A DNA stretch of 64,000 nt from Octopus sinensis (lineage: Eukaryota). The notes under the pieces were generated by a model, which saw only the letters and a list, made by a program, of their open reading frames with translations, had not been told where the DNA came from and did not search any database. Positions within the stretch are counted from its first letter, which is position 1, and each line of letters opens with the position of its first letter. Location of the stretch: assembly GCF_006345805.1 (NCBI RefSeq), contig NW_021832222.1, forward strand, positions 62,001 to 126,000, in the 5' to 3' direction. The position numbers and the translations under genes were made by a program. This document shows positions 3,699 to 62,460 of this stretch, piece by piece.

Positions 3699-6600
3699 AG
3701 AAAAATAATTGTTTTGTGGTGTACGGATGGTTGGTTTTTCGCAGTCTGAAAAAGTCATTCCCATGGACGGATCCACAGAAATTTTAACAAATGGAACTCA
3801 AGAAAGTGTGGACCTGACAGTTCATGGTCATCCTGATGCATCGGGCAATTGCAATTACGGACCCCCACAGACCCCTTCAACTTTGATTCCCATGAAAGCT
3901 ATTTGTGAGTCAATCGAATCTTCCAACCCTGGAGAATGGATGTCATCTCTATTGATTTGTGTCAAAGACCGTCTTAAACGAGTCCCCAGAGGAGGTTGGC
4001 CCCTCATTGCTACATATTTTAATTCTACATTCGGAAAAAAGAAATCAATATATGAATTAAAAAAAACTTGCTTCTTGAGGAATTATAATTCAAATTGATG
4101 CAAATAATTCTAAAACAATCGATGCGAGGCAACAGACATGGAAGATACCGTCTCAATATGTAATCACGAGTTAATCGAAATAATAAATAAATCATTGATC
4201 GAATATACAAAAACAACCTACCTACAAGTATTGAAGATATTTCAACTCTGATATATTCGCGCAATGTGTGTATCAACAAATTACAATGAGAGATCCATTA
4301 AAACGAATTGGAGCAGAGAATACAAAATAAAATTGAGTCTTTGACTGAAAAAAATATATTAATATCAAATACTTTATGTCTACTATCAAAGACGAAGAAA
4401 AGAAGAAAGTCGTTGATATTTTATGTTCTTACAATTACAAAAAATCCAAAAGGGGAGAATTTGAAAGAATCTCGACAACAATCACAGACCAGATTCGAAT
4501 TCTAAACAAAAAGGTGTCTATTGCAGATTCAAGGCGACAATACGGAATTGATAATCGGAAGTTTGAGTTGAATCGAAGGTCGTTCTACAGAAACCTCCAT
4601 TCTAACTCTGATAATCCTTTGATTGATTGTTTCGACACATCTGATTGTCTCAAATTTTGGATGGACGTCTGGAAGAAAAAGGACAAAAATGAGTTAAGTT
4701 TTGGAGTGAATAAGAGAGTTACTGGTGCTGAGCACCATGACTCCGACATCAATGACGAGTTCATTTTAAACTTAATTGAATCTCTTCCTAACTGGAGAGC
4801 TCCGGGATGTGATTGTGTATACAATTTTTTCATCAAAAAATTGGATTCTCTTCACAAATTCCTATTTCAAGAAATCAGAAATATTATTAACGGAACTAGT
4901 CACCCGCAAAGTTGGTTTTATACTGGAATCACTTACCTGATCCCAAAGAAAGCAACCTCTATTTACCCCAAGGACCTCAGACCGATCACATGTATGCCAT
5001 GTTTGTACAAACTGGTTACAAAGTGTGTGAATGAAAAAATTGCAATATATGCCGACACTTACAACTTGATAACTGAGTACCAGCTTGGAACTAAACGACA
5101 TTGTCAAGGAGCAAAAGAACTTGCATTTTTAAACAGATGCGTCAACAAAGCGCACGATAATAAATTATTTTGTGCATGGATCGACGTCAAGAAAGCATTT
5201 GACTCAGTTAGTCATGACTTTCTTGTTGAAATCCTCGAAAACTCTGGACTGCCTAATTGGATAACTAGTTTTATTATGTCAATTATTCCAAACTGGAAAG
5301 TCTCTTTGAGATTGGGAAAAAAACAGCTGGGGACTGTTAATATAGAACGTGGTATACTCCAAGGCGACTCTCTGTCGCCCCAATTATTTGTACTTGTTTT
5401 GGATCCGTTAAGTAGACTTTTATCTTCAAAATATCCAAATATATCGATAAATTCTGGTGACATTAATTCCTTAACCTTTTCTACAAATCACTTCCTATTC
5501 ATTGACGACTTGAAGCTATTGTCCAAAGAAGAGGAGACATTGGCGTGGATGATGGAAGATGTGAACTATTACTTTGAATCATCTGGTCTGGAGAGGAATT
5601 TCGATAAATCAGCAACAAATAGTTACCTATTAAGAAATGATGGTAAATTGATGGATGGTCTGGACAGCTACAGATATTTGGGAGTTTTAGAAAACAGATG
5701 TAGTGAAGTACTCAAAGAAGACGTACTCAAAAATATTAAAGAAGAAATGCAAAACCGTATTGAAAAGTTATCGGAAACTAAATTAAACTCAGTCAATTTA
5801 TTTAAAGCAATCAATGAACATGCTCTATCACTGTGCAATTACTATATTGGACTCATTGACTTAGAACCCTGTGAATTTGAAGAAATTGATAAATTAATCA
5901 GAAAAATACTTATGAATTTGAATGTGCACATGAAACCAGCTTGCAAAGAGAGACTTTACTTACCGAGGAATATGTTTGGAAGGGGATTGATATCTATCAC
6001 TTTCAAAGCTGAGAAAATGTTGTTTGATTTCAAAACAAGTCTGGAAAGGCGAAAATTTACTTCTCTGAGGAGTGCAGGAATTCTGTGGGCTGAACAACAA
6101 AGAAAGTCACATATGGCCACAATCACAGAATTCTTGCAAATAAAATATGAATCAACCCAGCACATTGAACAGACACTAAAGAGTCTGCAGATTGAGTGTC
6201 TGTTATCAGCTATTAAAAAGAAAACTCTCCATTCAAAATTATTTGAATCACTTGATAATGAGACTTTCGATATACAGACATCCTCAAAATGGATTGTAAA
6301 AGGAAATATTTCCCTAAATCTGAAGCCATGTTCTTCCTTCTGCAGGACAGGAATATTTTCTTCCGCGAGCTTGGTTCGAAATGCCCACATTGCAAATCTT
6401 CTAATAAGACAGTCGACCATTTGGCAACTCGATGCAATAGAATGCTTAATTCCGATTATACAAGGCGACACAACGAAATTGTTAAATGCATACACATGCA
6501 CCTATGCAGAAAATTTGGATTCAAAAAATCAAAAAGGTTAAAGACTCACTCTATCCAAAGCGTAATTACCAATGATCGTGCTGAATTGCGAGTTGACACT

Positions 6601-7193
6601 ACTATCCCTACCGAGTCAAAAATTCAATATAACAAGCCGGACATTTTCCTATACGACAAAAAATTAAACCACATATGGCTAATAGAGATTGGAGTTACGT
6701 GTGTGGATAATTTAAAAGCAGTTGAAGTTGAAAAACTTCATAAATATGATATCCTGGCAAGTGAATTAGAAATCATTTACAAAGCCAAAGTCAAAATACT
6801 TCCGATTGTCATTACCTGGGATGCGATCACCTCCAAGTATTTTAAAATATACATGGATTTGATTGGCATTAAAGACAGTGTTCTGGCATACATCCAAACG
6901 ATTGCATTAAAGAAGACGTTGGAAGGAATGTTCGTAGAATATAAACATGGTTTCGAAGACGTAATGACTAAAGCATTGATTCTCAACAAAGATTATGCAG
7001 TGTGGAACACTCACCAAAGGGGAGCTAACTCGATGAAGAGGAGACATGATGAGGTGACAGAAAACGAATACTCTGAGGAAGGACAAATTAATAGCAAGAG
7101 GATCACGAAAGATGATGGTGCTGTTCAGGGAGGCCCAAGACAGTAAATGAAAAATTTAGTTAATCTAACTTTTAATTTATCATTAATTGTATT
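3699..7193 (+). mobile_element. Near full-length R4/Dong-like (RLE-type) non-LTR retrotransposon; single ORF broken by frameshifts
   Basis: RT motifs NWRAPGCD, LRPITCMPCLYK, WIDVKKAFDSVSH, GILQGDSLSP, FLFIDDLKL, YRYLG (ORF 4376-6541). C-terminal CCHC knuckle CPHC...H...C, RHNEIV, KPDI, IEIG and KLHKY of a PD-(D/E)xK endonuclease (ORF 6289-7146). Flanked by 13-bp direct repeat TTATGAGGACGGG (3686-3698, 7194-7206). Confidence 0.9.
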
Positions 7194-8187: not shown

Positions 8188-9258
8188 ATGGCTGACAGTC
8201 AAGTTAGTGTATCGTTCGCAGGATGTGGATTCCTTGGAATATATCATGTGGGTGTGGCTCGTTGTATGCAAGAACACGCCCCTCATTTGTTTACTGGTCG
8301 ATTTTTGGGCAGTTCTGTTGGTGGTCTTATTGCGGCCTCATTAATATTGGGGCATCCTCTTTCAGTGATTTCTGATCTCATGATTGATCTGAGCACACAA
8401 GCTCGTTGTCGTTTTTTAGGCCCTTTTCATCCTTCGTTTAACTTGTCTAAAATACTCAAACGAATAATAAAGAATTCATTTCCTCCTAATGCATATCAAC
8501 TTTGTTCTGGAAGATTACACCTCTCTCTTACTCGTCTTTCCGATGGCAGTAACGTTATTGTAAATCAATTTGATTCAAATTGCGAATTAATTGACGCTTT
8601 AATGTGTTCATGCCATATTCCTATATTTTCTGGGCTGGTTCCCCCTAAATATCGCAGGGTTTTTTATGTTGATGGATTTTTATCTGATAATTTGTTGGAA
8701 TTTGACGAAAATACAATCACTGTGTCTCCGTTTTGTGGGTCTGTTGATATTTGTCCTCGTGATTTTTGTGAAATGCCATTTGGTTCGTTTATTGGGAATA
8801 CTCCAATGCAGTTCACTCTTTTTAATTTTTCTCGACTCATTAATGTCGTTTATCCACCCTCTAGGAGAGATCTTGCCTCCATTGCTCGTCAGGGATATCA
8901 TGACGCTCATCGTTTTATTCTGTTCTATTCTTCCCCGTCATCTCCATCTTTTCTATGCCACTATGCCCCTCAGTCCAGCTGTTCGTGCTGTGTGAATGCT
9001 TACTATAATCCTACACAGGATAGAAAATCTATGATCTTTAATTACTCAAGAATTATATCAAGTTTCATTTTATTGCCACTGGAAATGATAATTTCGTTTG
9101 TTTTTCGCTTTATTGCATATTTTCCTGAATTTTTTGGAGATTTGAGGCTATTTTTTCGAATTATTTACAGACAGTCTAAAAATGGATTGAAAAGATCTCC
9201 TAAAATGATTTTATATTCAAATGGGGATATACTTGCCACGTTTAAACTTTTTATTTAA
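8188..9258 (+). CDS. PNPLA2: Patatin-like phospholipase / triglyceride lipase (PNPLA2/ATGL-like)
   Basis: 356-aa ORF with SFAGCGFLGIYHVGV oxyanion motif, nucleophile GSSVG, SLTRLSDG, CSCHIP and YVDGFLSDN (catalytic Asp). A possible in-frame 27-nt intron lies at 8992-9018. Confidence 0.9.
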   Translation: MADSQVSVSFAGCGFLGIYHVGVARCMQEHAPHLFTGRFLGSSVGGLIAASLILGHPLSVISDLMIDLSTQARCRFLGPFHPSFNLSKILKRIIKNSFPPNAYQLCSGRLHLSLTRLSDGSNVIVNQFDSNCELIDALMCSCHIPIFSGLVPPKYRRVFYVDGFLSDNLLEFDENTITVSPFCGSVDICPRDFCEMPFGSFIGNTPMQFTLFNFSRLINVVYPPSRRDLASIARQGYHDAHRFILFYSSPSSPSFLCHYAPQSSCSCCVNAYYNPTQDRKSMIFNYSRIISSFILLPLEMIISFVFRFIAYFPEFFGDLRLFFRIIYRQSKNGLKRSPKMILYSNGDILATFKLFI

Positions 9259-14153: not shown

Positions 14154-16548
14154 TTATTTATTAAGAAAATCTTTTTTTTGCTGCAGCAAAAGTGATTCAA
14201 GATGATCTGCTCTTTTAACTGCAGCCTCATATTGGACTTTCAAACTATTAACAACTTGGTCCCTTTTCTCTAACGCTTTTGTAACCCTTTAAAATTAAAT
14301 AAAAGACAAACATCTCATGAACTTGCTGAAGTTCATCTTCTTTCATTTTTAGAGCTACATCATTGGCTGCTCTTATTCTCTCTATGTCAAGTTTAGCTTT
14401 TGTTGAAATCTCCGATTTTTCATTCATTAGACGTCTGTTTTCTTCGTCTGTCCGTACAATTCGTTCAATAAACTCTTGCCGAACTATTTCCGCTAATTTA
14501 TCTTTCTCAGAATTAAATATTTCTAGTTTCTATAGATATTATTTGCTGTATTTTTATTTGCCTTTTCTCTTTCATCAATCTCATAATCTTTTTTATTAAG
14601 ATTTACACGCAGTCTTTCACATTCGCTTTCCTTCTCGTAAAATTGTGCCTACAACTATTTTATCAGAACCTCTACTTTCAATTCAGCGTATTTGTTCCTT
14701 AAATCTTTTTCTGATGTTTCCAAATCAGATTGTGCTGCTTCATATCTGTCTCGCATCCGACTAAAATGTGAACTTTGGAAAGAATAACTTGATGCGATTT
14801 TCTGCAGTTTTTTCACTTTCTTGAAGCTGACGACGAGTCTCTTCTTCCAATTTGGCTATGGCCATTTCAATTTGTTTGTCCCGTTCTATACGTGCATTAT
14901 CACGGATTTTTCGTTCACACTCAATGAGTTTGCTTTCCTGTTGCTTCATCATGTTTTGAGTCCAAAGTTCCTTTTCCAAATTGGCTTTTTCCTCAATACA
15001 TCTTATTTCAATCTAAAACATAAAAAATTCAAAGTACTTCATGACGATTTTGTTGATCACTTTGAGCCTTTTCATATTCAAGGCGCATAAGTTCAATTGT
15101 TTTGACGTGATCTGTCATGATTTCTCTTCTTTGAACGTCCAATTCTTCTTTCATGCTCTTGTACTGACTTTCAAGACGAATTTTTTCCTCTTCTACTTGC
15201 TCAGAGAGCTTCTTTTTATAGTTTTCTGTAGCTTGTAGTTCGTGTTCGTACTGTTTTTCGTAACTGAAATTATCAATAAAAACTAAACCTTCTTTTTGCT
15301 AATTCGCGTTCTCTTGTACACGCAGCCTCTTTTTCCAGTGACAACTGTTCTCTTAGATCATCGGTAAGTTTGATGTATCGTTGAGAGACTCGATCTTCGG
15401 TACCCCTTAATTCTGCTTCATGAACTTCCTTCAAGGCTTTTATTTCTTGTTTGTTTTTAGAAATTAGTTTTTTTATTTCTGGCTCTAGACCTTTTATAGT
15501 AATTTCCTTTAAAACTGAAAAATCCAACTTTAAAGGTACCTTTATTCTTTCGGTTTTTTCAGAAATCCATTTTTCTTGCTTTAATTTTTCTGAAATTTCA
15601 CGTTTTTCTGCTATTTTGGTTAATTCTAGTTTGTGACTAATTTAAGTTCAATTTTAACAAAAAAACTTTTCTGTCAGCACCGAAATCTTTCGAGAATATT
15701 TTTCTTCAAGAGTCTTTAATTGAGTCACCAACTGATCACAACGTGTCATCAACTTTTTTTTGTCGTCGATTAACTATTTTATAATTGAAATTAAAAACCT
15801 TGTCGATAAATGAAAGATGCGAGTTAATTTTTTTTTCTTCCTCCTTTTTATTAGAATCCATAGAAGTATTCATTTCCGACTTTAATTGTTGCTTTTGTTT
15901 TTCAAAAAGTGTTTTTTGGTTTTCCTAAAATTTATTTTAAATACGTGAACTAAAGTTTGTCGTAGAGTATCGATAAGAGATTCCTTCTCCTGATTTTCGT
16001 GTAGTTGCCTCGCCAAGTATTCGGAAAGTTGAGTAGCAGCGTGTGATGCATGTTGTATTCGTAAGTCATTTTCATGCATTGCATTGCTAGTTATTTCTTG
16101 ATGTAAGTTTTGGTTTCGTTTTACTAATTCCTAATTTACTGTTTGCTGTTGGTGTAGCTGACCTGGTTAAGTTGACCGAGACGTTCGTTTTTTTCAGATT
16201 CGTTCAAAAATAGGATGACCTTGTTTAATTTGTCCTCGATTTCTTGATTTGAAGATTCTCCAAACAATTTTTCACTTTTGTGTGTTTTCGATTCAAATTG
16301 TGGAAATTCTTCTTCTTTTTCTAACAATTTAAGAGAATCCATGATCTCTTCCATTTTCTCAGCAGAGTAGTAAGACGATACACTGCATTGGTCCCATCTT
16401 CCACTCTCTTGATCCTACAAACACGTTTAGTTTTGCGATTTTACCGCATCAATACTTTGCTTATAATTGTCGACGTCCTCAATTTTCAAAATTTGATTAT
16501 CAGCCTTTGAATAAATAAATCAAATCTAACCTCCGGATATTCTTCCAT
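14154..16548 (-). CDS. CEP131: Centrosomal/centriolar satellite protein CEP131 (AZI1); start approximate
   Basis: KEITIKGLEPEIKKLISKNKQEIKALKEVHEAEL...ACTRERELAKRRF, ERIARIERDKQIEMAIAKLEEE and C-terminal QYEAAVKRADHLESLLLQQKK match CEP131 coiled-coil blocks; stop TAA at 14154-14156. Confidence 0.85.
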
Positions 16549-16965
16549 TTTATAATTTTCTTGTTCATTTTTAGTGTTATTTTTAACTCTAATTAAAATT
16601 AAAAATTGAATAATTGAGAACTCGTTTTTGTATTTTCTATTTTTAATATTTTCTGTAACAAATATGGATGAATTGACACTTTTCTAAAAATAATTTTTCA
16701 AAATATTAGAAAAAAAACGTGGACAGAAGGATTTGTAGTTTTACGAATCGATTTTGATGATTTTGGAACAACGCTGTTGCTTCGTGACATTGCTATACTA
16801 TGGAAACAATAATTTTAGAAATCTGTTTAATTCAAAAACTAACAATTAAATAAGATAATAAGTCACAAATTTATTCGAATGTTAAAATATTGAAATTTTA
16901 TACCATTTAATGATAATTAAATCTAATGTTTTTTTCAGATATTCCGTAATAATCATATTATAATA

Positions 16966-17844
16966 TGTCACATGCCCTGTTCGTTACCATGCCCGCTCGT
17001 TACCATTGCTCTAAATTTTTAAAATTTCAATTTAAAATATTTAAATGATTGAAATATATTTACTTATTAATTTAAAAATTAATAATATTATGGATTTTTA
17101 TTTTTTCAATGCTTAACCATTATCATTAAAAAACAATAAATTAAGCATGCTGTTTTATCTCATGGTTATGGTTAGGGTATAGGTTAGGGTTAGGGTATAG
17201 GTTAGGGTTTGGGTGAAGGTTAGGGTTTGGGTGAAGGTTAGGGTTTGGGTGAAGGTTAGGGTTTGGGTGAAGGTTAGGGTTTGGGTGAAGGTTAGGGTTT
17301 GGGTGAAGGTTAGGGTTTGGGTGAAGGTTAGGGTTTGGGTGAAGGTTAGGGAATTGGTTGGGTTTAGGGTTTGAAAAAATTTTTCGTTTTAAACTTCAGA
17401 TCTATATATGATTTTAAACTAAAAAACTGGATAAAGTTTGAGTTTTTTATAAGAGATCTACAGATGATTTTAAACCTTTATCTTTTTACATTTCAAAAAA
17501 TGTTTTAAATAACACTAACAACTGGTTAGAGTTAATTATAAAACTATCAAATTATGTGCCTTTAAAGCGTTTCACACAATTCACATTTTTAAAATATGTT
17601 TTAATGTGCTTATCAGTCAAAATGGTTTGTTGTATAAAAATATTATTTTAATTTATTTGTTTTAAAGCATCTTTTAGTATATCATTAAATTGTACTCTAA
17701 TTAACCTAATATATAGGTTGAATTTTATGTCGTTGTGATTGATTATTAATTTTTCTAAAAAATTGAAAAATCATTAATCAATTATTTCTCAGAAATAATT
17801 CGGAGGTAACGAGTGGGGCATAGTAATCCCTGAGGCATGTGACA
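16966..17844. mobile_element. Non-autonomous TIR element (Ginger-like MITE) carrying a telomere-like array
   Basis: Termini TGT...ACA; TIR TGTCACATGCC (11/11) + 7 divergent bp + TTAC(C/T)ATGCCC..CTCGTTACC (~39 bp in total); exact 5-bp TSD TAATA (16961-16965, 17845-17849); non-coding AT-rich interior. Confidence 0.85.
17164..17372 (+). repeat. Interstitial telomere-like hexamer array with 18-bp higher-order unit
   Basis: GGTTAT GGTTAG GGTATA GGTTAG GGTTAG GGTATA, then 8 exact copies of GGTTAGGGTTTGGGTGAA (17200-17343), then a degenerate tail. Confidence 0.97.
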
Positions 17845-18724
17845 TAATAGAACTGACTACATGATGCCATTTCTGAGTAAATCGCAGACATAAAATTAAT
17901 TGTAAGTCAATAATTATGATATCTGATTAGCGTCAGATTACTCTATGTTTTTAAGAGAAAAGTTTCTTTTAATACGATACATCTGCCATTTAAAGCAAAA
18001 ATGCAGTGAATAAAACTGAACAATTATTTTCTCAACGCCTCCCACTATACCCAAAAAGTCGATCTTTAAGAATTTCATTTACTATCTCTAAACTATTTTC
18101 TGAAATATCTATTTGAAACTTTGCAGGATGTTCTTAATGATTTTAAAATAATTGTCTACTGTTGGTTTATTAACGAGGTGAGGAAATACCGGTCTTTCTT
18201 TTTTCGAAGAGACTACGCTGTTGGTAAAACCAATTTATATTGAGAAATAGATCGAAACTTAAAAAAGTTGATAGATAACTCAAAAATACATCCTCTTTAG
18301 GTATGGTAAACCTTTTTATTTATATCGGCACAAAACTACAGCATAAGAATCTTACTATGCTTAATTGCGATAAATATTCTTTCGAAATTTTGTGACAAAA
18401 GTTTAAATTATGATAGTGATCTGGCTTTTACTTAAATCAAAAATCTAAAGACAATATTTTTTAGTAAAATACGTAACTAAAAACTCTTTATTTTTAAATT
18501 TGGTTGGATTTGGTTGAAATGTTTACAAATATTTTTATTGTACTAATAATTGAAAATTGATCAACTCAAAGGTTGGGTAATCATTAATGGAGTATTTTTT
18601 AAAGATAAAAATTGCTAAAAACCAAAAAAGTGAAGGTACATAAAAGCTTTAATGGATAATTTAGAAACAGAATAATAGTTCAAAATAATAAAAATGTCAA
18701 GAAAAACATTTATTAGATATTTAA

Positions 18725-20656
18725 CTACAAATAAATATTAAAATCAAAATCAAGTATTTCCATTTCATCAAAGACAAGAGGACATTGTTTAATTGAAATA
18801 AACTTAATTGCAGTACATCCTCGAAGCGGCCCCAAATCAGAAATATTTTTTATTTCTAAAAAAATAATGATAAATCAAATACGGTTTTTATCAAGATTCA
18901 ATTCTTCGAGATAGACAGAATCCTCCAATCCACAACAATTCATAATATTGTTAGAAGAAACATCAAGAATACGAAGATATCGCAATACATTGAAATGACA
19001 AAGAGAACAAAGGCCAACATTAGAAAGACACAGCTCGTAGATTCCAGCAAAGCACAAATATGCAGTTGAATCCGCAGGAAGTCCTCTGAAAACCACGTCA
19101 GTATTATCGATCCCACCATAATTTTTGACCACGCAAAACACTCTGCAATAAATTTATCCGCTAAATATATTTTTATTCCACAAAACCTGGATGAAGATAT
19201 CGCTCATGGTTTCTATTACTTTCACGAAGTTTTGCAAATATTGTTTTGATTTCAGTGTTATTATCAACATTGGAAATTGCTTGCAAAATCCAGGCTAAAT
19301 GAAACTGCGCATCTAACACCCTAAATTCAGTTTTTAATACTACTGCAATCCGGTTCAAATAACAGAAGCTGTCTTAAAGAGTCAAGTTGTCTAGAAATTG
19401 CGTGTTTGACTCGGATTGGACAGCGAATAACTTTCCTGTAGTAACAAAAAGGGGCAGTAAACCTATTCCAAGGATGCCAGTCCTCGACACGAACAGTCCA
19501 ATTTAACGAAGAATCAACAAAAAGACATTTCCCACGGAAAAATAATTTTATTTTAGACACTTCACTTTCCAAAATTTCCATCGACAGTTTCGCAATCTAA
19601 AAATTTCTAACTCTCAGATACCCATAAATCTCCATATATAGAGTTACTAGGTAGTGCATATAACTCAGTGATATCCACAGAAACCTCAGTCCCGTCTTCA
19701 TAGAAGAAAGAGGCACTAAGAGTCTCTTTCAGTTCAGAAATCTGAATATAAATCAAAAAGTGACCTCGACTAGTTTATCAAGAAAGAACACGATTTCTTG
19801 TCTGTTCTTATCAAAAGTGAATCCCATCAGTCTGGGGACATTCAAAATGCAATCTTCGCTCATCATCAGCCACCGATAGTAAATCCAGGCAGTCTCGTCA
19901 TAAGGATCAGTGTAATATGCGTTTTCTATCAATTGGAATTCTAAAATAAACTTTTAAATAAAACCAGTCTCCAATAACTCTTCATTTGGCTGTTTTATAC
20001 GGGAAGTCAAAAGTATAGAACGGTAATGCCAAGATGAATAATTCGAAAAGTTAGAATTTATCAAATCAAGAGTGAAATCTAATTCTTGATCCAAAGGCAA
20101 TTTTAGCAAATCGACAATTCTTCTACGATAGTTCCAACAGTGGACTAAAATGGGATATAAATAGTCATACAGTTCTGACCATCAACGTCTAATAATTGCC
20201 TACACAAGCTGAGTTCTTCTTTTAAAGAGACAAATTCAGGGTATGTCTGTATAAGCCATAATCTGTGATGCCAAACGCAGTAGCATTTTGGATGGCTCAT
20301 TAGACATCTTTTTATTAAGGAAAGTTCATTTTTGACAAGCTGTGAGTCAGATCTAGGTCTTAAAAATCAGTCTTTACTCCATTTTTAAAAAAATTTTGCG
20401 ACGAATACCCCACAATGTATATATGTCTTGAAATATATTTAAAACACGTGAAGTAAGTTCGAGTAATTTGTCATTATTTTCATCCTCGTTAACCTGACAG
20501 TTAAAAGTATAAAACAAACAAGTGAAAATATATTTTCCATCACATCCTGAAATTTTTTGACTTTTACTTTTTCATGTTCACGGCGACTGGGGTCGATGGA
20601 ATCTGTGCGAGGTCTTCCGTGCTATAAAATTAATTTACACATGTGAACTACACCAT
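18725..20656 (-). CDS. RABGGTA: Rab geranylgeranyltransferase alpha subunit (PFTA repeats, Ig-like and LRR domains)
   Basis: ATG|HGRPR N-terminus; WNYRRRIV, NFSNYSSWHYRS, FYTDPYDETAWIYYRWL; LRR LRILDVSSNNI...LEELNLDKN|QIKNISDLGPLRGC; stop TAG 18725-18727 after a 27-nt intron (18856-18882). Confidence 0.92.
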
Positions 20657-42636: not shown

Positions 42637-42673
<37 letters not shown>

Positions 42674-45600
42674 TGTAGTAAGGGTCAAACTACTAAGTAA
42701 AGTCAACAAACTAATAAATTCTCCCAGCGAGACGGAGGGAACAGCTGTTGCCACGCATGACAGCCAGCAGGATCCTCTGAATGAGGAAAGTAAATTCCCT
42801 AGGGTCCTTGGACCGCGAAGAACAAAGATTCCCAATTTCTTTAGGGAAGTGAGGGTCCGGAGCCAAAGACGCCGGAAGTCTCGACAACGATTGGCCAAAA
42901 CCAAAAGTCATCCATCAAAGACTGATATTTCCGGCACTTCGAAAGCTCAGCCTTATTAGCACGAGACCCAGCAAGAGGCCGATTCGTTGATGAAAGACTT
43001 TGAGAAGGTATCCACACAAGTGGAATCCCAGACCAAAGGTCTCCCAGAATAAAACGAGAACAACGTAGAGCCGTCCGGCCTTTTCCCGTCACCACGGTCG
43101 AGACCCTTAGGCTCAAGGACAGAAGGGTAGCCGGCCTTTTCGAGTGAGTCGAGAATGATTCTGTTAATCGCCGAATGGCGTGGAATACGACCCGCGCTTT
43201 TCTTGCAGGAGAGGGCATGGAGCCCGTATACGTCCATAGTAGATCCGCACCGGCAGGGGTGGGGACTACAGATCGGAAGTCCGAGGCGGAGGCAAATGCC
43301 AAAACGGAGAGCGTCGGAGTCAAGACAGGTGTCCAAATGGGTCGAAGGAAGGCAGTTAAGCCAAGAGCCAGAATGCGGTTGGCGGCTGGCACGGTAACAA
43401 GCCAGTCTGTGCTGGTTCAGGAGAGCCTCCAACAAGTCCGCATGATGCTTACTAAGAATTTTATCCCATTCACGTTGGAGGGACCTATCAGAAGGGAACT
43501 CAAGCCCTTTTTCCTTCCAAGCAAAAGTGCAGAATTAATATCAGAGTCCAAACGAGATCCGGCGATTTTTCAAGAATCTTATGGACAAGAAGATACAATC
43601 CTGAAGACGATGAAAGGAAAGCGGGAAGAGAAATGTCGAGAGCCGAGCGGAGCCCAAGCCCACCAAAAGGAACAGGAAGTTTGGCCTGACGCCAACCGAC
43701 ATCATCGAACTTGACGTTAAAAATAATCTCGGCTGAAGAACGCACCAGAGCGTCAAAAGACTCCAAAGCAGAGGGAACAGAAAAGCAACAGGAACTCCTT
43801 AGGACATATTGATCCTCGGAATCAAAAGAAAGTTTTTTTGGATAAAAAAAGCGGGATGGGGATCGATGTCCACAAGTTTATCACAAAGAGAAGCAGAGCA
43901 TTTCTCTTGGAATCGAGAATACGAGAGACCGATTGGTGGTGGATCGGGGCACCCAGGATTCAAGTTCAGAATAAGAGGTCTGCCTCAGATCGGGCAAGAG
44001 GCCACGAAACTGGGCAAAAAGGTCTTCGAAGGTGAGGTCTTCGACGTTAAGATTAACGATTTCAGATTTTAGAGAATTGATTTCAAGACCAATAGATGAC
44101 AACGCCGGAGTAGAGATTGCAAGTCGTTTAGCAAAATGTCGGGCGGACCACCAATAGTACAGTCGTCCAAATCCAAATATTAAGAGGGGACGCAATCCTG
44201 CGGGCGACAAAGTCCACCGAGAGGGCAAATAATAAAGGACCCAAAGGATCGCCTTGCTGTACGCCACAGGAAGACGAAATGAAAGAATCGCCAGCAACCA
44301 AGAGGCTCGGGTTACCATAAGAAAGAAAAATGAAGGGCAGCAGAGAAGGAATTCTGGCCTTGCAAACCTCAAGAAGATGCTTTCTATTGAGCGAATTGAA
44401 AGCGTTCTTCACATCCAATTTTAATAATAACTGGGGCCGCTCTGAGAGACGAGCCGATTCAATGAAACACCGGGCAGCGTGGACCGAGGCCTCGCACCCA
44501 CCAGGTACCCCCACACCCAACTGAATGGGCTGGAGTTCGTCGCTAATAGAAGGAATTACAAGCTTGCATCCGACCTTTGCAAACAAGCGACGAAAAACGT
44601 TCCCGACGGCAATAGGTCTGATGCCGCCGTCTTTCTTCCCCAAAGCAGACAGGTTCGCAGAGAAGAAGAGCAGTCTGGCATGCTCGGATATGTCCCCACG
44701 GAGAAATAGGTTACAAAGCTTGGCAATGGATTGAGAAAGACGGTTTCCAGCCTCAGCAGTATTGGAGATGAGGTCCATTAAGTGAATGGGACGGAGACCG
44801 TCAACACCACCACTACTGTTCCCCCTGAAAGATTTCAAAGCAAACAAAAGTTGTTGGACAGATGAAGAGGCGATCGAGACCTCCTCAGGGGTCCGGGCAC
44901 AAAAGGCAGGGACATCGCCAGCCGGGTGCTTGGCGCTGAGAATTTTGAGGACATCCGGGGTTATCGAACGGACGGAATCGGAGACGAAAGAATACGGACC
45001 GCAGAGCCGACATCATGCGCCATAAGGCAGGAATTGACACGTTTGCGTAAACGAATACGATTATCTTTAAGAGTAGTTGGTTCATGGGACTTGCCCAGAA
45101 GAGGAGGCAGAATGAAGGAATCCTCCATGAACTTATTAATATTTTCCTTGATGGAAGAGGAAAGGGATTTTACCGAGCCCAAGCCTTGAACTGGGGAGCC
45201 CAGGGCAAATATGGCAAAGCAAAACAAACGGTTCCAATTCGGAATGGACTGAACACAAATGACTGACTCGATCAAAGCAGACAGAGCCTTCGCCGCGGAA
45301 AAACGGGCAGAACGAGGAATTCTTATAGGAATACGATAGGACGCCCGGTAATCACGAGCGAGTCTTAAGACAGACTCTGGATTAAGCAGGAAGGGGTCCG
45401 GCGAAGGGATAGGATTAGTAAAATCAGAGGACCCGGTACAGATGGCAGGAGCGAAATATGACGGGGGGAAAGAAGAGCAAGCAGAGCAAACCCATCGGGA
45501 AGGGAAGAGGCAGATTTCTTAGAAAGCTTGATGCAGGATAAATGGAAAAGGCATAACAACAACGGTCACAACGGATGGTCTTTTTCCGATTATTACGGAT

Positions 45601-51979: not shown

Positions 51980-53782
51980 CAGTAGACTATTCATTTAACG
52001 AAAATGAAAATTGAGCATTCGTTAAATGAATTTAACGAAAAAAATATTTTAATTAAAAATTTGTCATGTAATCGGTAATTTTAGGTTCCTTCTTTTTAAT
52101 TTTTGCCAATATATTTCTCAAATTTGTAATTAGGTGAATATGTTCACCAGATTCTTGCAAAAAATATTTTTCAATATTTTCCAAATATTTAAGTGCATCT
52201 GCATAACCAATGGGATTGTCATTTGTGCTATCTATTTCTTCATGCTCATTTTCTTCCTCACATTATATTGTATCAAGATACGCGTTTTCTTCGCAGACGA
52301 CAGGTGCACAGACAGGAAACTCAATCATAATTTCACTTTTATTATCTTTAATTGTAAGGTGATTTAAATTTAATACCTTTTTCGTCAGTGGATTCTTCAA
52401 GTATTTTTTCATCTATCTTCGCCCAATTATTTAATGCCTTGTTAAAGCAATTTTTGATAGTGTCACTGTGACTTCGTTCCAAGCCTCAATAATTAAAGGT
52501 AGAGCATTCACTAATTTGAATTTGGTAAGTTCATCTGTATATGACAATGTTCCTATATTTGTTCCCATACTCAAATTTCTAGTCATTCCTTTTTTATACA
52601 ACGATTTAAATGAATGCACAATCCCTTGATCAATTGGTTGAATCTTAGATGTTGTCTTTTGAGGAAGAAAATACAATTCGATATTACTGAATTCGCTATC
52701 AAAATAGTGAACTGGCGCATTATCTAAAGGAAGCAAAATCTTTCTATTTCCACACTCATTTTGGAATTTAACCGGTCAACCCAGTTTTTAAAAATTAAAC
52801 TGGTCATCCAAGATTTATTGCTATTTGCATATTGAATCCCAAGATTATTCATATTAATATTTTTAAAACCATGAGGATTTTTGAATTTTCCGATTACCAA
52901 CGGATGCTCTTTATCTCCTTCCATATTTGTGTATAATAACAGTGTTATTCGTTCTTTAGAAAATTTTCCTGAAGCCCTTGATTCGGAGTCAAGAACTAAT
53001 GTTTTTTTTGGAGTACATTTGAAAAAAGGGCAGTTTCATCGCAGTTGTAAAAATTTTTCGATCCATATTTTTTAACATGGCTGCAAAGCGTTCATATGAA
53101 TCTATAAGCAAAACGGGATCCACTATTGTTCTTCTCCAGAAATCGTGAGTGTTTTTATTTTATACTCTTCCTTAAAGCGTGAAATCCATGGGTGAGATGC
53201 TTTGAAATTTTCAATATAAAATCGTTGAGCAATTTTGAGTGCCATTTCGCGTACCATTTCATTAGTTATGGTGTAATTACAGAAACGTTTGTTCTGAATC
53301 CATGCATATAGTGGTTCATATATCTTATCAGTACAACTTTTAAATGTAATATTCTTTTTTTGTTTGTGACGCCTTGATCCATACAATTGCATTTTCTTCA
53401 ACGTTGAATTTATCACTCCAATAGGCATATTAAACCGCTGAGCCAAATTTTCTTGAGTAACAGCAGGATTATTCTTCTTGAAATCAATAACTTCAAGTTT
53501 TTGTTGAATTTGATAAGTTTTTCTTTTTTTCTTCATATTGTTCACCCTTGCACACATGATTTACTACAAAGAAATAGCGAGGAAAAATTATTTTAAAATT
53601 TTATCAAAAATTTTAATTTTCGTTATTTAAATATTCGTTAAATATATTTAAATATTCACTAATACAAAGAAAAAAAAATTTTATTTTTGAATTTATCTAA
53701 GGAAAAACGTAAAAAAATATTTTGACTTTCGTAAAATGAATATTTTCGTTAAATTTTTTTTCGTTAAATGGATAGTCTACTG
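51980..53782 (-). mobile_element. pogo/Tigger-like Tc1/mariner DNA transposon, frameshifted
   Basis: 24-bp TIR CAGTAGACTAT(T/C)CATTTAACGAAA (1 mismatch) with TA TSD on both sides; HTH-psq + CENP-B HTH (ORF 53123-53557, FKASHPWISRFK); DDE_1 pieces PLVIGKFKNP, KSWMTS, LDNAPVH, FLPQKTTSKIQPIDQGIV. Confidence 0.93.
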
Positions 53783-54240: not shown

Positions 54241-54420
54241 GAGAAAGATGTCAATAATTCTATAGGCTAAGAATATTGGAAGAAATTGGGGTCAATAATT
54301 CTATATAGACCAAGAGGGCATAATGCCAAGATAAACTCTGGCCGCTGCTGCTCTAATAAGACTTGAATACTTATTTTCTCCGATTTTGTAATTTGTGAGT
54401 TTATATAAATGTGGAAAATA

Positions 54421-55007
54421 TGTGACATGGGCAACGCGTTACACATGGGCAACCGGTTACAATTGTAGGTTGGTAGTAGGTGTTTATAGTAGGTTGGTAG
54501 TAGGTCTCTCAACAATTTATTCAGATTTGCATTTGTCAGACTTCTTTTTTATAAATCTTCAAAAGAAGTATGCGACAACTTAAGATCACTTTTCTACCTA
54601 TATGGACCTTGAAAAGATTTTGCAATCAGATAATGGTTCAGAATTCAAGAATGTGTCTCTGAGAGATCTATGCGAAGAGTTCAATCTAGTTCAGATACAT
54701 GGAAGACCAAACAATCCCCGTACACAGGGGATGGATAAATTCGAGTCTCCTTTCTATCCGGGCGCTGAAATAATTAACATTTTATCAAGTAATCGAGTCG
54801 AGGCAAATCAATCATTTTTATTTAATAGATAAAATATGATAAAGGAGAGATTTGGACGGTACCAATTGCAAGAGTAAAAAATGATTAATTTTAATATTTT
54901 TTGTTAAAATGCATTATTCTTTCAAGTTATTCGATGATTAAAAATTGACATCTACAAGGTCAAAAATATAACCGGTTGCCTATACGTATCCAGCCGCCCA
55001 TGTCACA
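54421..55007 (+). mobile_element. Ginger2/TDD-like DNA transposon deletion derivative with integrase remnant
   Basis: TGT...ACA termini; TIR TGTGACATGGGC (12/12) + 15 divergent + GGCAACCGGTTA (12/12); 5-bp TSD AAATA (54416-54420, 55008-55012). Retroviral-type integrase core KILQSDNGSEFKN...IHGRPNNPRTQG at 54602-54730. Confidence 0.88.
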
Positions 55008-55173
55008 AAATATACATTTAATTTATAATTTCTTTAACTATAAAGTCGAATCAAAGCAAATCCAATTCTTTAAGCATCACACGTGGGGAGTAGAATCAAT
55101 CTTAGTTATTAAAAATGTGAATTTATATTCTTTTTTTATTGAAAAAACATGTTTTATGATCAAATAGAATTAT

Positions 55174-60514: not shown

Positions 60515-62460
60515 TTTTATTTATTTATCCCCGGCCCCTTCAATTGAAGGAAACCGGTGGCTAACATGAACGAAAGTGTCAATGTCGGACGCTCCCAAAG
60601 ATCTCAGATCGCGATCCGGTGTTTTGAGGAAGCAGAAGGTGGGCCTGGACACGAGAAAAGGTCACTGAGAGAGTGGGATTCGTGGATTCGGCAAGGCCTA
60701 TTCTTCGCAGATAATTGCGTAGCCCAATATGATGGTCACAGCGGAAAATGGCCAAGTTCACTCGGGCTTCTCTCTCGAGAGAGGATTCGATGTTGTTTAT
60801 TAGTGGCAAAATGCGCCCTAGAAGCTTGTTTATTTCAAGACATTTGATTGCCTTCGTAGCTACCAAGTCGTGAATTCTCTTCTGGTTATTGTCCGGAAGA
60901 AATAGTTTAAGCATGCGGATTTTGTCCGCGAAGGTCGGAATTATTTTCCTGTTATTGGAGGAGTGCCAGAGAAAGTAGGCGGGGTGATTTAGCTTTCGCC
61001 ATTTGTCAAGAAATTGTAACCCAAGCATTTCAAAATGGTCTCTGATAGGAAGGATTTTCGATTCCCAATGTAAGTGGTCAGTAGGTGTCGTTTTTAGACA
61101 GCCCGTAATAATTCGTAATGCTGAATTTTGGGTTCTCTGAAGTTTTTCAAGGTTTGCAATAGATAAACAGGAGCCCCAAGCTGGGACAGCGTAGTTCATT
61201 GTTGTTCTGATAAACTGCTTGTATACAGTTATTAGACATGACGTCCCCGCAATAGCTCGAAGCACATTGAGTTTTTTCTGGGATTTTTCACAGATGTATG
61301 AAACATGTTTCGAGAAAGATAAACAGCAGTCAAATTTCAGACCCAAGATTTTTGGGGAATTTTCAACTAGGAGTGGAATGTTGTCTAGGAATAGTTTAGG
61401 CTCTAAGTAGAACTGATTACGGTCAGTTGTGAATGGAGTAACAGATGATTTGGATGTGGAAGGTTGAAGAAGATTGCATTTCAGCCAAAACGATAGAGTG
61501 TTCATGTGTTCCTGCAGAGATCCAGAAGCGGTGTTAATGTTTTGGTGGCAAGAGACAATAATTATGTCATCAGCGTAGGAGAGAAGTAGAATATTATTGT
61601 TCGTCGGGATACTGGACAGATGTAAGTTAAATAAAGCAGGTGAAAGAACCGAGCCTTGGGGAACCCCGTTAGGCAAGTATTTGTAACGTGAGTAAGAGGA
61701 CATGATTGTCGTGCGACCTAGACGCCCAGAAAGGAAAGAGAGTAACCATGACTTTATTTGATGAGGAAATTCCGTATCGATTATTTTCCTACACAGAACA
61801 TGTCTCGACGTTCTGTCAAATGCTTTTTCAATGTCGATGGATGCAATAAGTGTTATTTGAAGAGGATTATGATTGTTAAACCCATCCGCAATGAATTGTG
61901 TCAGTCTTGAAAGATGGGTCAAAGTGGAATGCAAAGAACGAAAGCCGTGTTGAGATTCAGCAAATGGAAGGAAAGGTTTTATGATGCTCAGTACTACTCG
62001 TTCTGTTATTTTTGAAACCACTGAAATCAAAGAGATAGGTCGAAAAGAAGAAGAGTCAGAGGTATCTCGATTTGGTTTTGGAATATGGATGATGATCAAT
62101 TTTTTTTCAAAGCATAGGAACCAAACCATGGTCGATCGAGTATTCGATTAAATTGGTCAGGGCCAGAAAGCCATTTGGACCGAGATTTTTTAGATGGTGG
62201 ATGACAAGACCATCCGGACCTCTGGCATTAGAATTCCTCGAGTTAACAACAAGCTGCTTTGTAAGTGATTCCGGGATGTTAATAAAGTGCGTAGAATTGA
62301 CATTGGAATTAAAATGAGATTTTCTTATGAAACGGAGATTCTTTGGGGTAGGAAGGTGACTAATTTTTGCATAATGACGAATTAAGATGTTAGCTTGATC
62401 CCGAAAGGATAGGACAGATTTTTCGGACGAGATGTCGGTGGCATTTAGAGAGGGCATGTT
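60515..62460 (-). mobile_element. 5'-truncated Vingi/I-group non-LTR retrotransposon (RT and C-terminal region)
   Basis: ARGPDGL, IPKPNRD..SFRPISLIS, QHGFR, SIDIEKAFD, GVPQGSVLSPALFN, YADD, PKILGLKFD, TPTDHLHWESKILP, frameshifted H...LFSCP...DLWERP; (TAAA)n tail ~60515-60528; nonsense/frameshift lesion near 62105. Confidence 0.88.

Follow-up and report, generated by a model that had tools for sequence, protein, structure and literature searches.

What kind of element is the 879-bp unit, here called E1, that lies between two genes of an octopus genome and encloses a block of telomere-like hexamers, and is this block telomeric sequence or a minisatellite? E1 occupies positions 16966–17844 of a 64-kb stretch of DNA (the window, 64,000 nucleotides at its full length) from contig VCDQ01003531.1 of assembly GCA_006345805.1, which is an assembly of Octopus sinensis (PMC10700109). 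E1 is probably a non-autonomous cut-and-paste transposon of the Ginger2/TDD type with a passenger minisatellite. An earlier sequence-only reading of this stretch had invoked a dicyemid context, which is wrong, and the assignment of the contig to Octopus sinensis excludes a dicyemid as the host.

Boundaries and ends of E1

The features that delimit E1 are as follows.

16961–16965 (no strand): left copy of the target-site duplication, TAATA, 5 bp (exact flanking match)
16966–17844 (plus strand): E1, probable non-autonomous Ginger2/TDD-like transposon of 879 bp (ends, target-site duplication, blastn, window scan)
16966–17004 (plus strand): left terminal inverted repeat, with two tandem units behind TGTCA
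17805–17844 (minus strand): right terminal inverted repeat, its outer 11 nt identical to the left end
17845–17849 (no strand): right copy of the target-site duplication, TAATA, 5 bp (exact flanking match)

E1 begins with TGTCACATGCC and closes with GGCATGTGACA, giving termini of the form TGTCA...TGACA, and the TAATA duplication around it is exact and cannot be extended to 6 bp. Each end consists of TGTCA and two tandem units of 16–17 nt, as found by Tandem Repeats Finder and by alignment. At the left end the units are CATGCCCTGTTCGTTAC (16971–16987) and CATGCCCGCTCGTTAC (16988–17003), within a repeat called by Tandem Repeats Finder at 16971–17006; at the right end the outer unit is diverged and the inner one, ATGCCCCACTCGTTACC, is conserved. 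The terminal inverted repeat of about 39–40 bp is therefore composed of 11 perfectly matching nucleotides, a diverged stretch of 12 nt and an inner block, ATGCCC(N1-2)CTCGTTACC. When the left end was aligned locally with the right, the score was 32, compared with 12.2 ± 2.1 (maximum 20) for shuffled sequences. The tandem end units are presumed to be the binding sites of a transposase.

In a scan of the whole window, only two elements combined a TGT...ACA inverted repeat of 10 nt or more with an exactly repeated 5-bp flank, E1 and a second one at 54421–55007; the same scan under a first-order Markov null yielded 0.04 per window, with a maximum of 1 in 200. The longest open reading frame of E1 comprises 53 amino acids and is located within the telomere-like array. 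A tblastn comparison of E1 with integrases revealed no integrase similarity, and the six-frame, stop-free pseudo-protein of its non-array parts had no match in a collection of 5.8 billion proteins. Rfam and tRNA scans of the region returned zero matches, so that there is no sign of an origin from a short interspersed nuclear element or an RNA gene.

The description given by the sequence-only reading, that is, a non-coding element of 879 bp with TGT...ACA ends, bipartite inverted repeats of about 39 bp and an exact 5-bp TAATA duplication, was thus borne out. Its designation as a miniature inverted-repeat transposable element (MITE) holds for the structure, since E1 is short and non-coding and has a 40-bp terminal inverted repeat and a 5-bp target-site duplication; its size is at the upper end of the MITE range. 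As the name further implies many, homogeneous copies, the designation is structural only, the window holding one copy in 64 kb: comparison of E1 with the window by blastn retrieved E1 itself and no second copy. The exact two-module pattern of its inverted repeats was absent from the viral contigs and metagenome contigs scanned.

The second element and its integrase relatives

The other element recovered by the scan, E2, has the following features.

54421–55007 (plus strand): E2, internally deleted Ginger2/TDD-like element of 587 bp, representing a sister family of E1
54523–54733 (plus strand): rve integrase remnant within E2 (Pfam rve, E = 4.8e-5; HMMER, tblastn)

The termini of E2 are TGTGA...TCACA (TGTGACATGGGC...GCCCATGTCACA), flanked by an exact, non-extendable 5-bp duplication, AAATA, at 54416–54420 and 55008–55012. 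Its 39-nt inverted repeat scored 38 against 12.3 ± 2.2, and the layout of the ends is that of E1, with the tandem units CATGGGCAACGCGTTAC and CATGGGCAACCGGTTAC behind TGTGA. The integrase remnant is situated between these inverted ends and is split by a frameshift into the parts 54523–54609 and 54614–54733; it contains DNGSEF...GRPNNPRTQG, and its approximately 70 residues correspond to residues ~168–237 of relatives about 450 amino acids long. The interiors of E1 and E2 share nothing meaningful, their best local alignment being merely an AT-rich low-complexity stretch. A short G/T-rich repeat with two copies of GTAGGTTGGTAGTAGGT is found at 54465–54505, within E2 and just inside the left inverted repeat; its strand, and the end at which it lies, are those of the E1 array, but it has no hexamer period.

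A word-based protein search with the 82-residue E2 integrase remnant gave no match. When 1.84 billion representative proteins were scanned in full with HMMER, the remnant had 100 matches at E-values up to 1e-3. The best full-length relatives have about 420–460 amino acids and combine an H2C2 zinc finger with an rve core, with no reverse transcriptase; a few of the weaker matches are copia-type Pol proteins (P0038, P0044). The names that the sources give to relatives include KRBA2-like and SCAND3-like, and the KRBA2 and SCAND3 gene families derive from the Ginger2 clade (PMC3575427). The KRBA2/SCAND3-like loci of Mercenaria (L003, L004) are multi-exon gene models, and a script scan for inverted repeats flanking the integrase of L003 found none. 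The closest relatives show 60–72% identity over about 40 residues (69–72% in tblastn against microsporidian integrases). These closest relatives (P0002, P0003, P0004, P0011 and P0101) come from microsporidia of amphipods, namely Dictyocoela, Cucumispora and Nosema granulosis. Their closeness to the remnant may reflect horizontal transfer among genomes associated with marine and freshwater invertebrates, or sparse sampling.

Two autonomous relatives allow the ends to be compared directly. In Dictyocoela muelleri (locus L002), a 1796-bp element that has TGTCG...CGACA ends, an inverted repeat of 213 nt (98%) and a 5-bp TATTA duplication encodes the 450-residue integrase P0101, which is 69% identical to the E2 remnant. 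On a Logan contig (L006), a 600-residue integrase lies between TGTGG...CGACA ends; the inverted repeat of about 41 nt has two tandem units ending in AACGCGTTACC, an exact 12-mer, GCAACGCGTTAC, is common to this element and E2, and TTAA on both flanks is probably a 4-bp duplication. In an alignment of the eight ends of E1, E2, L002 and L006, 11 columns are invariant, among them those of TGT and of the AC at the close of the first unit. Both relatives are thus like E1 in their TGT...ACA ends, in the two tandem units of about 17 nt behind the terminus and in the AT-rich flanking repeats (5 bp in L002, 4 bp in L006); they are unlike it in being autonomous, 1.8–2.2 kb long, equipped with a gene for an integrase of 450–600 residues and free of any telomere-like array, and their hosts are very distant from octopus. 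Among proteins, they match the E2 remnant most closely, at 67–72% over about 40 residues. A tRNA T-arm-like string, GGATTCGAACC, occurs in the subterminal region of the Logan element (positions 270–330 of L006 and 62–122 of L007), where ARAGORN called no tRNA.

Probable assignment to the Ginger2/TDD superfamily

Ginger2/TDD elements are defined by TGTNR ends, duplications of 4 or 5 bp, AT-rich targets and a transposase with an HHCC motif plus a DDE core (PMC2836005, PMC10045372), in agreement with what the sequence-only reading had stated about their ends and duplications. TGTNR...YNACA termini are present in E1 (TGTCA...TGACA) and in E2 (TGTGA...TCACA), and both elements have AT-rich 5-bp duplications (TAATA and AAATA). 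Their inverted repeats of about 39–40 bp compare with 41 nt (L006) to 213 nt (L002) in the related integrase-encoding elements. The combination of H2C2 and rve without reverse transcriptase is read only in the relatives of the E2 remnant, E1 encoding nothing. Judged by these sequence characters, E2 and its relatives appear to conform to the published definition and E1 has every character in it that a non-coding element can display. The Ginger-like nature proposed earlier is supported by E2, with the same end design and an rve remnant, and by the integrase-only inverted-repeat relatives with TGT...ACA ends. The TDD-4 and TDD-5 elements of Dictyostelium and metazoan Ginger2 resemble E1 in their TGTNR ends, terminal inverted repeats and AT-rich targets; the 5-bp duplication of E1 is as in TDD-4/5, whereas metazoan Ginger2 families have 4 bp. 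Non-autonomous derivatives, to which E1 may be added, are known in this superfamily, as exemplified by the Ginger2-derived MITEs Ginger2_NA of Bombyx and Rhodnius (PMC3845634). No Ginger2 element with an internal telomere-like array turned up in the literature searches.

Other classes of integrase-related DNA elements were ruled out. Polinton/Maverick elements have 6-bp duplications and AG...TC ends; GingerRoot/IS3EU elements have 6-bp duplications, mostly TA...TA ends and no HHCC motif (PMC10045372); IS481EU elements have been reported from parabasalids only, with duplications of 4, 15 or 25 bp and no HHCC motif (PMC10045372); and Ginger1 has 4-bp CCGG or CCGT duplications (PMC2836005).

Several observations weigh against the assignment of E1 to Ginger2/TDD. 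E1 has no protein remnant, and its superfamily placement comes from the ends and the duplication alone. By plain local alignment the similarity between the ends of E1 and E2 is not significant (15 versus 11 ± 2), so it is architectural rather than statistically strong, and the count of end motifs used a pattern derived from the very ends that were counted. Metazoan Ginger2 has been reported with terminal inverted repeats of 50–180 bp, a range that the 40 bp of E1 just misses, and with 4-bp (TATA) rather than 5-bp duplications (PMC2836005). The link of the E2 relatives to Ginger2/TDD is provided only by the names given by their sources and by the derivation of the KRBA2 and SCAND3 families. A second copy of E1 was found neither in the window nor in the viral and metagenome contigs nor in the protein collection, and as a member of a mobile family E1 is therefore only putative.

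TGTNR ends with a 5-bp duplication are also shared by Gypsy-type solo long terminal repeats (LTRs), which is a further point against the assignment. According to that explanation, E1 would be the solo LTR of a Gypsy-like retrotransposon, left behind by LTR–LTR recombination, with the minisatellite in its U3/R region. Gypsy LTRs typically have TGTNR...YNACA ends and a 5-bp duplication (PMC2836005, PMC10045372), 879 bp is an ordinary LTR size, and the weaker matches to the E2 remnant include the copia-type Pol proteins mentioned above. Such an origin is nevertheless very unlikely, because the two-unit inverted ends of E1, about 40 bp long, match those of the integrase-only inverted-repeat elements L002 and L006 as well as those of E2, in which the integrase remnant lies between inverted, not direct, ends. 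Moreover, the window holds no E1-related gag, reverse transcriptase or RNase H, nor does E1 recur there as a direct copy.

The telomere-like array of E1

The array and the sequence directly behind it occupy the following positions.

17164–17373 (plus strand): telomere-like minisatellite with the G-rich strand on plus (Tandem Repeats Finder, hexamer parsing)
17372–17475 (plus strand): imperfect 56-bp tandem duplication with two 48-nt copies, 73% identical, directly after the array

The array measures 210 bp, is G-rich and starts 199 bp from the left end of E1. Tandem Repeats Finder reported a period of 18, 10.4 copies and 97% matches. It comprises about 12 units of 18 bp, of which eight identical central ones, TTAGGGTTTGGGTGAAGG (17202–17345), have diverged units on either side. 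In hexamers the unit reads TTAGGG-TTTGGG-TGAAGG. The left edge, in the same register, consists of TTATGG TTAGGG TATAGG followed by TTAGGG TTAGGG TATAGG; the centre of (TTAGGG TTTGGG TGAAGG) x 8, all alike; and the right edge of TTAGGG AATTGG TTGGGT followed by TTAGGG TTTGAA... One canonical TTAGGG per 18-bp unit is constant. Canonical hexamers make up 13 of the 35 in the array, the other 22 being non-canonical, and there is a single TTAGGG dimer. The array holds 13 of the 17 TTAGGG hexamers of the whole window, all 10 occurrences of TTAGGGTTAGGG with at most one mismatch (0.12 expected) and 19 of the window's 21 starts of G-quadruplex-like motifs.

As judged from this structure, the array is a minisatellite whose unit appears to stem from about three telomere-type hexamers, and it is telomere-like rather than telomeric, because the 18-bp period persists in the diverged units at its edges, canonical hexamers account for just 13 of 35 and a single dimer is present. 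A (TTAGGG)n tract, by which telomeric and interstitial telomeric repeats are recognised, is lacking in E1. The TTAGGG-variant array of the sequence-only reading is accordingly confirmed in its position about 200 bp from the left end and not as a real telomeric tract. The resemblance to the host telomere repeat is nonetheless real, because TTAGGG is the only cephalopod telomere motif that has been determined experimentally (PMC13218726). The divergence pattern indicates that the edges of the array are older and that its centre has recently been re-expanded. The 56-bp duplication at 17372–17475, also within E1, suggests repeated local duplication of this part of the element.

Searches beyond the window yielded no counterpart of the array. 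The 36-nt dimer of its unit was not found in metagenome contigs, and neither the 18-mer unit nor the inverted-repeat sequence of E1 occurred in the literature searched. Four loci of autonomous relatives (L002, L005–L008) contain no telomere-like array, which means that such an array does not characterise the superfamily.

Origin of the array

The structure of E1 can be explained by two processes. In transposition, a Ginger2-type transposase (H2C2 zinc finger and rve DDE core), supplied in trans, would bind the paired end units and process the CA-3' ends of E1, as retroviral integrases do, and the ends would be joined to the target with a 5-bp stagger, leaving TAATA on both sides. Within the element, a short (TTAGGG)3-like seed would have given rise to the 18-bp unit, which replication slippage or unequal exchange would have multiplied; divergence of the edge units would have followed, and the centre would lately have been re-expanded to eight identical copies. 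The array would be a passenger minisatellite that offers, at most, G-quadruplex-prone DNA and one AGGGTT half-site per 18 bp upstream of a coiled-coil gene.

Two other histories have to be weighed. The array could be a family cargo, shared by the majority of copies in a multi-copy Ginger2 MITE family that would spread interstitial telomere-like sites in the octopus genome, at which TRF-like proteins might bind or G-quadruplexes arise. In the tandem-repeat-containing MITEs of molluscs and insects, core repeats indeed characterise whole families, in varying copy number (PMC3879986); to judge from the divergence of its edge units, the array seems to predate its last expansion, the hexamer is the cephalopod telomere motif (PMC13218726), and the G/T-rich repeat of E2 is in an equivalent position and orientation. 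That repeat, however, lacks hexamer periodicity, the four autonomous-relative loci have no telomere-like array, 22 of the 35 hexamers are non-canonical with one TTAGGG dimer only, and the window holds one copy of E1, which leaves the cargo explanation quite unlikely. It is likewise unlikely, if somewhat less so, that the array was inserted by telomerase or by end-joining during double-strand-break repair, in the manner of mammalian interstitial telomeric sequences, and then degenerated and re-expanded as a locus-specific event. Insertions of telomeric repeats at repaired breaks have been documented in vertebrates (PMC7215372), and the first hexamer of every 18-bp unit is constantly the canonical TTAGGG; on the other hand, a pure (TTAGGG)n core is lacking, the junctions show no informative microhomology, and an 18-bp period extending to the array edges fits the growth of a minisatellite from a short seed equally well.

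Mobile elements containing host telomere-type repeats include TBE1 and Tec of ciliates and, in rotifers, Terminons and telomere-associated Penelope-like elements. In these ciliate and rotifer elements the repeats are at the termini or form them and are tied to chromosome ends or programmed elimination. E1 is unlike TBE/Tec and Terminons in that its array is internal, 199 bp from the end, degenerate and in an ordinary intergenic region, and its termini are TGTCA...TGACA and not the telomere repeats that end TBE/Tec elements. No DNA elimination is known in octopus. For the telomere seeds, the breakage and healing and the programmed rearrangement that had been envisaged for this locus no evidence was obtained, the array being internal, degenerate and embedded in ordinary octopus intergenic DNA.

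The passenger minisatellite of E1 can also be compared with interstitial telomeric repeats of vertebrates (PMC7215372). Both are short, internal, non-terminal blocks of telomere-like hexamers. The short vertebrate repeats are near-perfect (TTAGGG)n at repaired breaks, whereas the array, which lies inside a transposon, is a higher-order repeat of 18 bp in which two hexamers of each unit are non-canonical. By analogy, the mollusc tandem-repeat MITEs, with the association of transposons and satellite-like DNA that is typical of molluscs, offer the best model for the behaviour of the array: pearl, DTC84 and DINE-1 of molluscs and insects are, like E1, short and non-coding, with flanking modules around a tandem array (PMC3879986). 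They differ from E1 in their AA dinucleotide duplication, short subterminal inverted motifs and probable relationship to Helitrons, none of which is seen in E1, and in their core repeats of about 100–170 bp accompanied by a tetranucleotide microsatellite (PMC3879986). Neither the AA duplication nor the order of left module, core repeats, tetranucleotide microsatellite and right module that characterises these elements is found in E1.

Genomic neighbourhood

E1 is intergenic between two minus-strand genes. The gene to its right is RabGGTase-alpha-like, contains PPTA repeats and faces E1 with its 3' part (exons 18875–20517, minus strand); the one to its left, a coiled-coil gene (14248–16548, minus strand), faces E1 with its 5' side. 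The minus-strand ATG at 16548 is 418 bp from E1 and compatible with the start of CEP131 proposed earlier; the distance of about 420 bp given then was accurate, and the name CEP131 is a candidate only, as a Pfam search of the coiled-coil exons gave no match. A single-exon gene for a patatin-like protein, whose protein cluster has one member, is present at 8188–9258; this protein maps to VCDQ01003531.1, the one contig on which it is recorded.

Further remnants of transposons abound in the window, some of them non-LTR reverse transcriptases and others of the pogo/Tc5 type. Three open reading frames of non-LTR retrotransposons are located at 4376–7146 (plus), 44128–44847 (minus) and 60579–62129 (minus); Pfam RVT_1 matches were obtained in two of them (4376–6541 and 60579–62129), and the one at 44128–44847 is reverse transcriptase-like by eye only. 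A run of 33 T residues at 42639–42671 may represent the poly(A) tail belonging to the minus-strand element that lies upstream of this run. The pogo/Tc5-type transposase remnants, on the minus strand, match DDE_1 (52431–52736) and HTH_Tnp_Tc5 (53123–53557).

Significance

E1 combines known kinds of sequence, a probable Ginger2/TDD non-autonomous element and a minisatellite, and its novelty is modest. If correctly assigned, E1 and E2 document elements of the Ginger2/TDD type in a cephalopod, the superfamily being rarely annotated; the octopus repeat survey consulted for comparison contains no mention of Ginger. Their 5-bp duplications had earlier been tied to Dictyostelium TDD-4/5 and not to animal families. 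The two tandem units of about 17 nt behind TGTNR, common to the integrase-only elements, provide a concrete guess at the transposase-binding sites, and the telomere-like minisatellite adds a further mollusc case of a transposon with tandem repeats. There is a slim chance that E1 belongs to an octopus family of Ginger2-type MITEs, present in many copies, all of which contain the 18-bp array; unless the array is such a conserved cargo, the finding would have no bearing on the biology of telomeres or of genome rearrangement. If so, this family would be the first integrase-related DNA transposon known with such a cargo and would constitute a main source of dispersed telomere-like, G-quadruplex-prone sites in cephalopod genomes.

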